A stretch of 64,000 bases of DNA from Blastocystis sp. Blastoise (taxonomy: Eukaryota > Protista > Bigyra: Opalinata): the NCBI GenBank assembly GCA_039096225.1, contig JBBPEB010000026.1, positions 806,001 to 870,000 of the forward strand, read 5' to 3'. This document shows, piece after piece, positions 8,502 to 13,525 of this stretch (position 1 is its first letter; each line of letters begins with the position of its first letter). Position numbers and translations under genes: made by a program. The notes under the pieces were generated by a model that worked only from the letters and a program-made list of their open reading frames with translations, ran no database searches and was not told where the DNA came from.

Positions 8502-11500
8502 ATGAGTGAAAAAGGTATGTTATAGTAAAGGCAAAAAATAGTCGCTTGTTTAAGCATTCTTTTTGAAGTGCTTTCTTTATTTTTGCTTATTCTTCATGAT
8601 CTACTGTATATATAGATATTCAGCGACTTCCTCATAATCAACAAAATCGTCAAGTTGAGGAATCTGTAAGTTCATCTGTGTTTTCTTGTGTTTTTATATG
8701 CTATTTTTTTTATTAACTTATAGCAGATGAATGAATCTGATGCTTCTCAAATGATGGCTCGACAGAATCAGTATCCAGGAAATCCTTATAGTCAAATTCA
8801 AGTTTTAATGGCTCCTCCTTTAAATCCTATGTTTAATCAACAGATGAGAAACAATTACTATCCATATGGACCCGTTCACTTTGCTCCTACTCAAAATATT
8901 GGTGTTCCTGGTGAACCTTATTTAACATCACTTTCTGTTCCTCAAATGAATTCTATTCAAATCTCTAGACCTGATCCTAATGGGATTTCTCTATCGAATG
9001 ATAATACCTATCACTCTTTAGCTGTTATGCCTCCTCCAATGAATCAAGATTTATTACCTATGGATGAATCTCTCAATTTACCTATTATGAATGTATGATA
9101 TATATATGTTTATCTATACATTCTTTTGAAATTTGTTGAAAAATTTAATTATATTATTATGTTATTCGTGTTTTTTCTATTTAAGATTTTTTTAAATGAT
9201 ATTTTTATATATTTTTTAATGTTTTTTTAATGCTATTTTTATGTATTTTTAATTTTTTTTTTATATATTTGATTCAAATTTTTTATTATATATTTATTTA
9301 TTATTGAGTTTTCATTCTTCTATGTATATATAAAGTAGACTTCATAATATACTATAATTATATCCCTTATACTATGTATATATAAAATATTGACTTCATA
9401 ATATACTATAATTATATCCCTTATAGAATGATCAGACTCGTAAGCGAAAACGAACTGTTTGGAATGAACCAAATCAAGAAATAGATAAAACACCGATTAG
9501 TTATTACCCTCAGGAAAATGTTGATTCTATACAATCCTCAATATTAGCAACTAGTTATTTATCACAACAACAAGAATCTAAAGTATTAAAATTATTCGAA
9601 ACTTTAGATAAAGATAATTATAGGTATATTATTATTTGTTTTTTTTTAAATCCAAATTATAGCTTAATATATTTTTTTATAAATATAATTTTTATAAGAA
9701 TTATAGTTTAATATATTTTTTTATAAATATAATTTTTATTATAATCTCTTACTCTTATCTCTTTATACACTATATGATTAATTTAAATAATTTCATTTTA
9801 TTATTTTTTTATTATTTTCTTGTCTAGATTAACAGATCAATTTATGCAAGAAGCAGTGAGTCGTATGATGTCTCATGATAACCGTGGGAATTCCTACAAG
9901 ATGGATCCTCCTTCAGTGAGTTATATACATCAATTATTGAAACATAATATATATTTGAAAAGTCGAGAACCCTATATTCCTGATAATTCAAAGAAGAATA
10001 TAGATAATGAGACTTATAATCGATATTTTATGAGTTGTGTTATTGCTATGCCTTCTAATGATGAAACCCTCTTAATGAATCAACGAATGTTAACGGAAGA
10101 TATAGAGAATCAACATTTATTAGATAAAGATTATGAATATAAAGAAAAACGTAAATATACTACAAATCAATTGCAATGGGCTGTAAATGCGACTACCAAG
10201 GGATTATCGACACGTGAGGCTGCACGCCAAGCGCACGTGCCTCGCAGTACGTTACATGATAAGATCCATACTCAGCGATCTACAAAACCTGGTAAACCAA
10301 CAGTATTAAAGAATGATGAAGAAGCTATTTTAGCTACATTTGTGACTCTTTTAGATTCTCAAGGTATACGTATACCGCGTGAAGATGTCAAGAAATTAGT
10401 TATGGGAATGCTGCCAGGAGAACGAGGTCATCCATTTAAAGATGACGGACCCCATCGTCATTGGTTTCGAGGGTTTTATAAACGTAATCCTCAAATAATG
10501 CAATTCCGATCTCAAAGTACACCGATACCTCGTACCAGGCTAAAACAAGAACAAATGGATCAATTCTTTGAAGAAGTACAGAGACTACGAGATGAAAGTA
10601 TGGTTATTGTTTTATTTATTTAGTTATTATTTATTTTATTTATTATTTATTATTTATTATTTTATTATATTATTTTATTTATTATTTATTCTATTTGCTT
10701 TTATTGCTTTTATTTATATTTATTTTATTATTTATTATTTATTATTTATTTTATTTAATATATTTATTATATTTATAAATTATTTTTATTATATTTAATA
10801 TATTTATTATATTTATAAATTATTTTTATTATATTTAATATATTTTTTTAATCTTTATATATAAATTATGATTTTAATAAATACATGTATCAATTATAAT
10901 TTATGTTCTTATTATACTATTTTAAAATTTTTAATTCATTTTTATAAATAATTATTTTTTTTTTATAATTCTTACTCCATATACTTATAATATATGTATA
11001 TATAGATTTAGTTGTAATAGCTGCCCAACGTCCTCAATATGCTCGTTTGGATCGTACTGGATTTCATTTTAATATTCCTACAGATCCTATTTCTATTAAT
11101 CCTATATCTTATTCTTCTCTTCCTACAACTACATCAACTACTCTATCATCTATACCTGCATCTATTCCATATTCATCTCATTCACAACAAAATACTAATT
11201 ATATATCACAAGATAATACTTTAAATACTCCAAATAATTTAGAGAAATCAAGTATAGAGACTCTCCATGTATCTCAACAATCTACTTCTTTATCTCTACC
11301 TGGTGTGTTACCTTCTTCTCTTACTACAGATCCTACAGATCCTAATGCTTCTACTAATAATAATAATCCTAATAATAATCCTACAGCACCTTCTTCTTCT
11401 TCTTCTCCTCCTACGACAACTCACCCTTCTTTACTTACGATGTCTTCTATAAGATCATCTTCTATGAGAAAGAAATGGTCACAAGAAACATTATTTTGGG

Positions 11501-13525
11501 CAATTGATCAAATTACCGCGGGAAATATAGGTATCAAAGAAGCTTCGGAACGTACTAATATACCTGTAGCTACATTACGTAGTAATTTGAAAGTACAGAC
11601 AGTTCCAGGAAAACGTGGTCCACCTACGGTATTAACCGAAGTAGAAGAATTAGCATTAGAACGATTCTTAATAAAACTAGATGATTGGGGATATAAAGCA
11701 AATCGTGAATCTCTTAGTAAATTAGTTATGGATATAGTAGCACAAGACGGAAGAGAACATCCTTTTAAAAATGATGGACCTCATAGACATTGGTTTCAAG
11801 TATATATATATATATATATGGTTTTGTTGTTTTTTAATATATATATATTTATTATTTTATTATTTTAATAATTATTTATAATTATTATTATATTTTTTTT
11901 ATAATTTTTAATAATCATTTTTTATAATAATTTTTTTTTATAATTTTTATAATATTAATATAAAATATTAATTTGAATAATAATTTATTGAATAATATAT
12001 ATTATAAACTAATATATTTTAATATAAACCCTAATAAATATATATAAATTCTTTATAGGGTTTTTATCGTCGTCATTCTATATTGGATGCTCGTCGTCGT
12101 GCGTCAGGAACATCTCTTTCTCGTCAAGATGCTCCACCTGAATTAATGAAACGATTTTATGATGATTTAGCGGATGTAAAACAACAATATTCTACGGATG
12201 ATTCGAATGGTTCTTTAAAAGGAAAGAAATCGAAATTAATTGCAAATACTCCTTTGGATACTGTTCGAAATGATTTATCGGATGAAAATCGTGATGATAT
12301 GGGTTTAGGAGTAATATCTGATTTAAAATCACTTGGAAAGAAAGGAGGAAGACCGAAATTGCCGTTGTTCTCCGTACAACCATGCCGTCAACGTTTCCGT
12401 ACTATAGAGATTATGCAATATATTCGTGATTTTGCTTTACAACATGATGAGAATGTTGATGATATTTTATGGTCTTTATTGATACAACGTGTTAAAGGTA
12501 GTGGTTATAAAGAAATAGGAGATATGTTACAACAATTATGTAAGAGATGGAGTGATGAAATACAAATATGTAGAATACCTATAAGTCAAGCATATGAAGA
12601 TGTTACGAATACAACAAATACTTCAAATACATTGAATACATCAAATTCACTTACAAATCCATCAAATTCTACTCTTCCACCTCCTCCTTCTCCTCCTTCT
12701 TCTTCTCAAAACCCTCTTCTAGAACCTTCTCTTCTTCCTCATGATCTATTAGTATCTTCATTGACGAATCCTCTGTCATCTAATAAACCCCAAGATTCCT
12801 TAACGAACGAAGATAGTGATAGTCCAAATGACTCCAATAACTCGAATAATAACTCGAATACTGTGTCTCATCATAATATCACAGAAGATCTTCAAGAAAC
12901 ATTACATCCTTCTCTCTTTGATGCACTAAATGGTACTGTAAATAATTCTATATCAAATAGTCTTCGAAACACTATGAATAATTCTTTAGAGAATTCTATG
13001 ACTGCTACTCTTCCTCCTGGATTACAAAATAGTATGAATAATAGTATTACTAATAGTATTACTAATAGTATGAATAATAGTATGAATAATGGTATGAATA
13101 ATGGTATGAATAATACTATGAATAGTATTAATAATAGTATATCTAATGCTATTCAAAATACAATGAATTCCTCTTTAAATGCATCAATTCCTACGGAACT
13201 ATCATCATCAATGAATCGAGATATGAATCCTTCTTTATCGTTACCTTCTGTTTCATTGTTAAATAATACTATTTCAGGTCTTGGTAACTCTTTGAACTCT
13301 TCGATTTCGAATTCTATGGAAACTAATAATGATAATAATAATAATACGAATAATAATCATTCACCAAATAATAGCAATAATAATAATAATCATTCAAATA
13401 GTAATAATAATCATTCAAATAGTAATAATAATCATTCTCCTAATGATAATAATAATAGTAATTCTCCTAATAATTCTCCTAATAATAATAACAATAATAA
13501 TGAAGATCAAACTACTCGAGTATAA
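8502..13525 (+). CDS. Domesticated pogo/Fot1-Tigger-derived DNA-binding protein: two psq-HTH + CENP-B-HTH modules, RAG1-NBD-like segment, Pro/Gln and Asn/Ser low-complexity regions, no intact DDE domain
   Basis: Module 1 (about 10147-10500): KYTTNQLQWAV..STREAARQAHVPRSTLHDK..GKPTVL..EE..HPFKDDGPHRHWFRGFYKRNP. Module 2 (about 11464-12080, spliced): KKWSQETLFWAI..ASERTNIPVATLR..GPPTVLTEVEE..HPFKNDGPHRHWFQGFYRRH. Intron-containing, no flanking TIRs seen. The start at 8502 is inferred from in-frame splicing. Confidence 0.8.

Follow-up and report, generated by a model that had tools for sequence, protein, structure and literature searches.

The DNA analysed here is a stretch of 64,000 nucleotides from Blastocystis sp. 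Blastoise (contig JBBPEB010000026.1, positions 806,001–870,000), referred to below as the window. It contains a conserved, single-copy gene for a putative DNA-binding protein, and one segment of this protein (12344–12550, forward strand) is probably an exapted homologue of RAG1's nonamer-binding domain (NBD) that stands without a catalytic core. The NBD is the part with which RAG1, the enzyme behind antibody gene assembly, grips DNA. A preliminary description of the window singled out this segment and aligned it by eye with the RAG1 NBD. The peptide that it reported is the exact translation of these positions, and the opposite strand is full of stops. The segment lies in frame in a 480-codon open frame (12083–13525), roughly halfway along a protein of some 1200 residues. 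The conserved block consists of two features.

12344–12358, forward strand: GGRPK arm, the counterpart of RAG1 GGRPR (residues 389–393), invariant in 12 distinct orthologues.
12380–12571, forward strand: three-helix NBD-like domain according to the AlphaFold model (H1, 12380–12442; H2, 12455–12499; H3, 12509–12571).

The RAG1 signal is visible only through orthologues. When a family profile of 10 sequences (A2) is searched against the 177,635 distinct sequences of the PDB, the first 16 matches are all RAG1, and the best is the isolated NBD (3gna_A; E = 4.8e-5, 26.4 bits). Amphioxus RAG1L (BbRAG1L, 6b40) follows the RAG1 entries with E = 0.14. The corresponding values for a profile of 12 sequences (A6) are 6.6e-5 for RAG1 and 0.084 for RAG1L, and two orthologues used as single queries place 3gna_A first in the PDB (E = 2.4e-4 and 3.2e-4). 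Across the two profiles, RAG1 entries fill the first 15–16 ranks. The HMMER alignment of A2 with 3gna is colinear over 69 residues (profile 7–75, chain residues 19–88) and contains one gap, the same single gap that the alignment by eye had required. Reciprocally, the Pfam RAG1 model PF12940 was run on seven orthologue segments one at a time and matches six of them, with E-values between 3.2e-4 and 1.4e-2; every match falls at positions 5–76 of the 653 in the model, which are its NBD end. The identity of the NBD-like domain to RAG1 is only 15–23%. Profiles A4 and A5, which represent other domains of the same protein and serve as a control for composition, never match RAG1. No AT-hook protein appears in the PDB match lists of A2 and A6, and structures of CENP-B, Tc3 and pipsqueak (psq) proteins are not matched by A2.

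After removal of the first 14 columns of the profile, which hold the KKGGRPK arm, the sole PDB match at E ≤ 10 is the NBD* of amphioxus RAG1L (E = 0.8, 12.8 bits), in the same register. With the full profile, RAG1 chain 4wwx_B still reaches 12.5 bits although it has no arm. The arm and the helices thus contribute roughly equal shares of the score. It is very unlikely that chance alone would again leave a RAG-family NBD in register as the lone match among all these sequences.

The AlphaFold2 model calculated on A2 has a disordered start followed by helices at residues 21–41, 46–60, and 64–84. The predicted local distance difference test score (pLDDT) is 87–96 in the core blocks and 79.5 on average over the model. 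Foldseek returns nothing from the PDB at E ≤ 0.001; ranks 1–9 (E = 0.08–1.6), 11, and 12 are all RAG1, the best at E = 0.084 with a probability of 0.99, and 3gna_A has a target-normalised template modelling (TM) score of 0.64. VIA-align superimposes model residues 15–80 on RAG1 residues 395–459 with a Z-score of 6.3, and the deviation from 4wwx_E is 1.7 Å over 53 residues. In a structure search independent of Foldseek, all three helices are spanned by RAG1 entries only, with few exceptions, and those have a poor root-mean-square deviation. The structural alignments to RAG1 and the hidden Markov model (HMM) alignments are in the same register, residue for residue. The preliminary description had staked its reading on a profile match and a related fold; the former is significant, and the latter is a predicted three-helix fold with the RAG1 NBD in register. 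Because the Z-score does not exceed that of generic helical background, the structural evidence is compatible with homology but would not decide the matter alone.

The residues by which the RAG1 NBD reads bases are R391 of the GGRPR arm and R402 (PMC12711392). GGRPK aligns with GGRPR, and the arginine equivalent to R391 is invariant in the 12 orthologues. The Q-K-x-R of RAG1 helix 1 aligns with an invariant Q, K/R, x, R. Along helices 2 and 3, hydrophobic residues are invariant at a row of positions (V, I/V, L, W, L, L and then L, L, W). The corresponding helices of the RAG1 NBD form the dimer core in the 3GNA structure; by this analogy, the invariant hydrophobic faces are compatible with a dimer.

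Orthologues were collected by an exhaustive phmmer search of 1.84 billion representative sequences with the opening 184 residues of the exon 5 translation. Only nine proteins are found (E = 5.6e-45 to 1.5e-4), all of them last-exon open frames from metagenomes, and a metagenome scan brings the NBD-like domain to 12 distinct versions. Searching A2 against a set of 5.8 billion proteins yields three short fragments of the same family only, in a length window that excludes long proteins. One of the open frames, P0007 (262 aa), looks chimeric: its membrane-anchored N-terminus of bacterial appearance runs straight into the NBD-like exon, probably as a result of mis-assembly or a read-through call in a metagenome.

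The orthologue contigs are from gut metagenome assemblies, several labelled human gut, and have 35–64% GC and very short introns. The source assembly consists of 34 contigs that total 33.34 Mb, and G+C is 23% in the window. Isolates of Blastocystis from tortoises have genomes of 26.0–33.3 Mb with 21–23% GC and long introns, and human subtypes have 39–55% GC and 30-bp introns (Genome Res 2025, PMC12129017). The source genome fits the tortoise isolates, and the orthologues are assigned to human-gut subtypes; the gene family is therefore probably Blastocystis-wide.

In the orthologue alignment, the NBD-like domain is the most conserved block of exon 5. It consists of the basic-flanked GGRPK arm and about 65 residues with 32 invariant positions; to either side of it, the sequence varies in length and cannot be aligned. 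Between the window and contig L004, 32 codons are identical, 30 differ synonymously, and 10 non-synonymously. Synonymous differences far exceed non-synonymous ones in close pairs, and the amino acids are kept where synonymous sites are saturated. The NBD-like domain occurs once in the 33.3-Mb genome, and both helix-turn-helix (HTH) modules encoded upstream of it are likewise confined to the one gene. The architecture and the intron position are identical in all six lineages examined in full (L003, L004, L008, L009, L010, and L011). The shared intron separates HRHWFx from G-F/Y-Y-R-R-H at a codon boundary that is identical in all of them, and its length ranges from about 30 nt to 259 nt. Genes for a Peptidase_M48 protein and pyruvate kinase lie downstream in several human-gut orthologue contigs; these neighbours are not seen within about 10 kb downstream of the gene in the window. 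Since the gene is single-copy, shares its neighbourhood among orthologue contigs, and has this pattern of codon differences, it is, on sequence grounds, a host gene, as had been proposed, that is under purifying selection and not a transposon copy.

Only low-complexity sequence follows the NBD-like domain, with no domain for dimerisation and DNA binding (DDBD) and no pre-RNase H, RNase H (DDE), or zinc-binding core, consistent with the original view that the RAG catalytic core is absent. PF12940 (RAG1) and PF03089 (RAG2) have no match in the 33.3-Mb genome; the bacterial controls are uninformative, yet the same search finds 17 DDE_1 domains. It had also been suggested that RAG-like elements exist or existed in this lineage. 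The NBD-like domain hints at this indirectly, and no such element is found in the genome. For Aureococcus, another stramenopile, a complete transposon with RAG1L and RAG2L is reported, and Transibs reportedly have an equivalent of the NBD in which GRP is conserved (Tao et al. 2022, PMC9435367); Blastocystis is absent from the supplements of that paper. Because of this transposon and this NBD equivalent, a RAG-like donor within the stramenopiles is plausible.

Two HTH modules precede the NBD-like domain, and they are 41% identical to each other (E = 2e-26).

10147–10491, forward strand: module 1, a psq-type HTH and a second helical unit ending HRHWF-GFYKRNP.
11467–11799, forward strand: module 2, a psq-type HTH and a second helical unit.

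The preliminary description called both modules pogo/CENP-B-type. Module 1 matches Pfam HTH_psq with E = 4.4e-4 and 20.3 bits, against a cut-off of 20.4, and the best HTH_psq value is 2.6e-4. Profile A5 matches the HTH of LCoR (2cob) with E = 0.0068, and the same structure is matched by Foldseek with a probability of 1.00 and by VIA with a Z-score of 7.1 (1.5 Å over 48 residues). These values are marginal but consistent, and show the first HTH of the modules to be psq-type. The second helical unit has no match to Pfam HTH_Tnp_Tc5. CENP-B(1-129) is its Foldseek rank 2, a weak match (E = 0.49, probability 0.28) in a region of low model pLDDT, and its W-F-x-G-F-x-K-R motif resembles the CENP-B family by eye only. 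The earlier designation is thus reasonable for the first HTH and is unproven for the second. Exon-by-exon Pfam scanning detects no DDE_1 domain in any exon.

Pogo-type DDE_1 open frames of about 480 aa, at least 17 in number and mostly stop-free, are spread across many contigs elsewhere in the genome and apparently form a young family. One example is G000:C2:483324-483776 (L023 1273–2703, minus strand). The DNA-binding region of one resident pogo transposase is colinear with the module but weakly similar (hhalign E = 0.0029, probability 11%). In the human-gut orthologues L003 (6570–7916), L008 (3699–4913), L009 (1871–3331), and L010 (3004–3729), module 1 seems to consist of the second unit only (GKPTVL...HRHWF). 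The psq-type HTH, which lies at 10147–10290 in the window and is also present in L004, is not visible by eye upstream in these four.

Several observations weigh against homology of the segment with the RAG1 NBD. With the window's own sequence as the query, in a piece of 89 or 184 aa, neither the PDB nor Pfam yields a RAG1 match, even at E ≤ 10. The scores are without exception modest (26 bits at most), and the family profile has little depth (effective sequence number, Neff, about 1.9). The PF12940 scores of 14–19 bits are under the whole-model gathering cut-off of 25 bits, as is expected because the segment is one-tenth of the model. The short KGGRP arm that supplies half of the score resembles common AT-hooks, and the helical part alone, at E = 0.8, is without significance. 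HzTransib chains are present in the PDB and are unmatched by the family profile. In the structure search independent of Foldseek, RAG1 reaches only ranks 8, 11, and 14; unrelated two-helix hairpins reach a Z-score of 7.2, so that RAG1's value of about 6 is not above the helical background. The AlphaFold model may also echo the RAG1 structures of its training data. The column of R402 is variable (N/C/S/T), and an invariant arginine follows one position later. Finally, the splice that would place the HTH exons and exon 5 in one protein is read from orthology and splice sites.

Because the scores are modest and arm-heavy, convergence is a serious rival, unlikely as we consider it. It would make the segment a Blastocystis-specific three-helix domain behind an ordinary AT-hook-like GRP arm, resembling RAG1 by chance or by convergence since both are short DNA binders made of a basic arm and amphipathic helices. 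The weakness of the profile without its arm, the silence of the window sequence on its own, and the background-level Z-score are all as this rival would have it. A search of ESM-atlas features does not point to RAG1, and an atlas fold search has no match. The clusters ranked first in the feature search are GCR1_C, a Crypton-type DNA-binding domain, with a score of 0.86; this candidate is rejected, being below the trust line and without Pfam support. Yet E-values of 5e-5 to 3e-4 are obtained with three different HMMER queries, and the reciprocal Pfam search agrees. The match lists are free of AT-hook proteins, and what the helices alone retrieve from 177,635 sequences is still a RAG-family NBD in the same register. 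The residue-for-residue agreement between sequence- and structure-based alignments, and the failure of the other domains of the same protein to match RAG1, also argue for homology, which we infer here, rather than convergence.

Two further explanations are both very improbable. The gene might carry its pogo-type module a third time, in degenerate form, as this segment; the GRP arm would then be the GRPR-like linker found in Tc1/pogo DNA-binding domains and the helices a decayed CENP-B-type HTH. The upstream modules indeed also carry G-(K/P)-P-T-V-L and then helices, and BLASTP weakly pairs helix 3 of the psq HTH with the linker that precedes GGRPK (E = 0.068). Otherwise, BLASTP against modules 1 and 2 is weak or empty, and hhalign of A2 with the second-HTH alignment A4 is empty, with a probability of 0.15% and a single aligned column. 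The sequence that leads up to GGRPK is unconserved and variable in length, A4 and A5 do not match RAG1, and A2 does not match CENP-B, Tc3, or psq structures; on the BLASTP and hhalign results this candidate is rejected. Just as improbable is a mobile element, either the remnant of a RAG-like/Transib transposase or a chimeric transposon. Apart from this gene, only transposases and proteins descended from them are known to have this type of domain, and active-looking pogo elements are present in the genome. However, one copy exists in 33.3 Mb, and no RAG1, RAG2, or DDE domain lies in or beside the gene. The gene structure and the Peptidase_M48 and pyruvate kinase neighbours recur in human-gut orthologue contigs, although these neighbours are not seen in the 10 kb or so downstream in the window, and the codon differences point to purifying selection. 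Copy number, orthologue neighbourhood, and selection lead us to reject a transposon remnant. Homology to the RAG1 NBD, exapted in a host gene, is therefore the explanation that we favour.

In the favoured explanation, the gene would encode a host protein of about 1200 residues with no enzymatic domain, composed of two tandem psq-type/pogo-like HTH modules, a disordered linker, the GGRPK arm, and the 65-residue three-helix domain. Exaptation would have taken in the arm and the three-helix domain but not the catalytic core of RAG/Transib. If the protein works as RAG1 does, the arm arginine would insert into an A/T-rich minor groove, and the basic residues of helix 1 (invariant R, Q, K/R-x-R) may touch the DNA backbone. 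Two chains would pair through the hydrophobic face that is invariant in helices 2 and 3 (V, I, L, W, L, L ... L, L, W), so that DNA would meet a dimer with two arms and four HTH modules. The protein might act as a sequence-specific regulator of chromatin or transcription, or as a binder of transposon ends. Dimerisation, DNA binding, and the choice of target are all modelled on RAG1 here.

The closest known counterparts are the RAG1 NBD (mouse RAG1 389–464; 3GNA and 3GNB) and the NBD* of RAG1L (6B40), which have in common with the Blastocystis domain a GGRP(K/R) arm followed by three helices of similar length. The arm arginine, the Q-K-x-R of helix 1, and the hydrophobic pattern of helices 2 and 3 are shared with the RAG1 NBD, and the best full-length structural matches of the domain are to RAG1. 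In contrast to RAG1, the Blastocystis domain is not joined to a DDBD/RNase-H core; it lies near the middle of a protein, after HTH modules, instead of at the start of a transposase core. R393 is replaced by lysine, and the R402 position is unconserved. Transib and RAG-like elements, including AanRAGL, reportedly carry an NBD equivalent with a conserved GRP and occur in stramenopiles (PMC9435367; AanRAG1L is compared by its description only), whereas no Transib, RAG1L, or RAG2L core is detected in the Blastocystis genome.

The gene also resembles domesticated pogo proteins (CENP-B, Jerky/TIGD, fission-yeast Abp1/Cbh, pipsqueak, and LCoR) in being a host gene that keeps transposase-type HTH modules, and its first HTH matches those of HTH_psq proteins and LCoR. 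Unlike in these proteins, the module is tandemly duplicated, DDE_1 is absent, the second HTH falls outside HTH_Tnp_Tc5, and an NBD-like domain is added. AT-hooks of the HMGA type share the basic-flanked G-R-P core, but in Blastocystis the motif is invariant and belongs to a conserved, folded domain of three helices.

In the literature searched, every description of the NBD has it as the leading core domain in transposases of the RAG1, RAG1L, and Transib kinds, and no other host protein is described with one. The same searches find no combination of HTH modules with an NBD-like domain and nothing that links Blastocystis with Transib; reports naming both Blastocystis and RAG1 concern host immunity, for example colonisation in a mouse model. 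A bolder proposition, which we consider unlikely, is that the NBD is an autonomous, transferable, dimeric DNA-binding module and not merely a part of the RAG/Transib enzymes. It would have been exapted alone into a Blastocystis host regulator, or its origin would be the reverse. If so, the Blastocystis gene would be the first known case of an NBD exapted alone into a host regulator, and a molecular fossil of RAG-like/Transib elements once present in the Opalinata branch of the stramenopiles. In the opposite direction, the ancestor of RAG1L/Transib would have taken its NBD from such a Tc1/pogo-associated DNA-binding protein.

If the homology is true, this conserved, catalytically naked NBD-like domain would show that the module can function and be selected by itself. 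It would add a data point on the age of RAG-like elements outside animals, and a second, independent lineage in which to study DNA reading by an arm and a three-helix dimer. In Blastocystis, the most common eukaryote in the human gut, the protein is also a candidate for a sequence-specific regulator; to our knowledge, very little is known of Blastocystis transcription factors. The debate on the age of RAG-like elements outside animals has so far been based on Aureococcus and a few fragments (PMC9435367).

The gene model was obtained by aligning our reading of the DNA against orthologous contigs, and all searches were run exon by exon. It comprises five exons on the forward strand, at about 8727–13525, with lengths that total 3591 nt (about 1197 codons).

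8727–9092, forward strand: exon 1, read from the sequence; ATG at 8727, Q/N/P-rich N-terminus, donor GTATGA at 9093.
9427–9623, forward strand: exon 2; basic RKRKR stretch resembling a nuclear localisation signal, phase 2 end (AG|GTATAT), matching frame at L004 5972–6217.
9828–10597, forward strand: exon 3; holds HTH module 1, colinear with the single-exon orthologue L003 6570–7916.
11006–11799, forward strand: exon 4; holds HTH module 2, phase-0 donor after HRHWFQ.
12059–13525, forward strand: exon 5, the last; acceptor AG at 12057–12058, stop TAA at 13523–13525.

All introns are GT-AG. Two codons are split, AG|A and A|AT, and both recreate residues whose codons are unbroken in orthologues. 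The former, between exons 2 and 3, gives arginine and restores the conserved RLTDQF; the latter, between exons 3 and 4, gives asparagine. N-terminal motifs of exon 1 recur in the orthologous open frame L004 5593–5970, and the GFYRRH of exon 5 continues the motif that module 1 shows unbroken. Orthology and splice-site reading thus suggest that the exons are joined into one protein. The 408-nt intron between the HTH modules (10598–11005 in the window) is missing in several human-gut orthologues (L003, L008, and L009), where the modules are in one exon. Introns of the gene contain short AT-rich tandem direct repeats of about 40–60 nt (9330–9425, 9650–9760, and 10760–10850).

Exon 5 contains four further features around the NBD-like domain.

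12134–12187, forward strand: conserved short segment PELMKRFYDDL..., kept in all orthologues.
12188–12343, forward strand: variable linker, probably disordered; unalignable, with a length that differs between orthologues (model residues 1–8 have pLDDT < 50).
12590–13501, forward strand: low-complexity tail rich in N/S/T/P, unconserved among orthologues, with no domain found.
13502–13522, forward strand: conserved C-terminal end (…T-x-V), from the alignment of orthologue C-termini.

The segment at 12134–12187 may mark the place where the catalytic domain of a pogo transposase would start. The C-termini of the frames P0002–P0007 and L008–L011 have a conserved ...N-E/D-x-x-(T/A)-x-V (TRV, TTV, THV, ARV, and ADV). 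Coming after an unconserved tail, the C-terminal ...T-x-V resembles an end of the class-I PDZ-ligand type.

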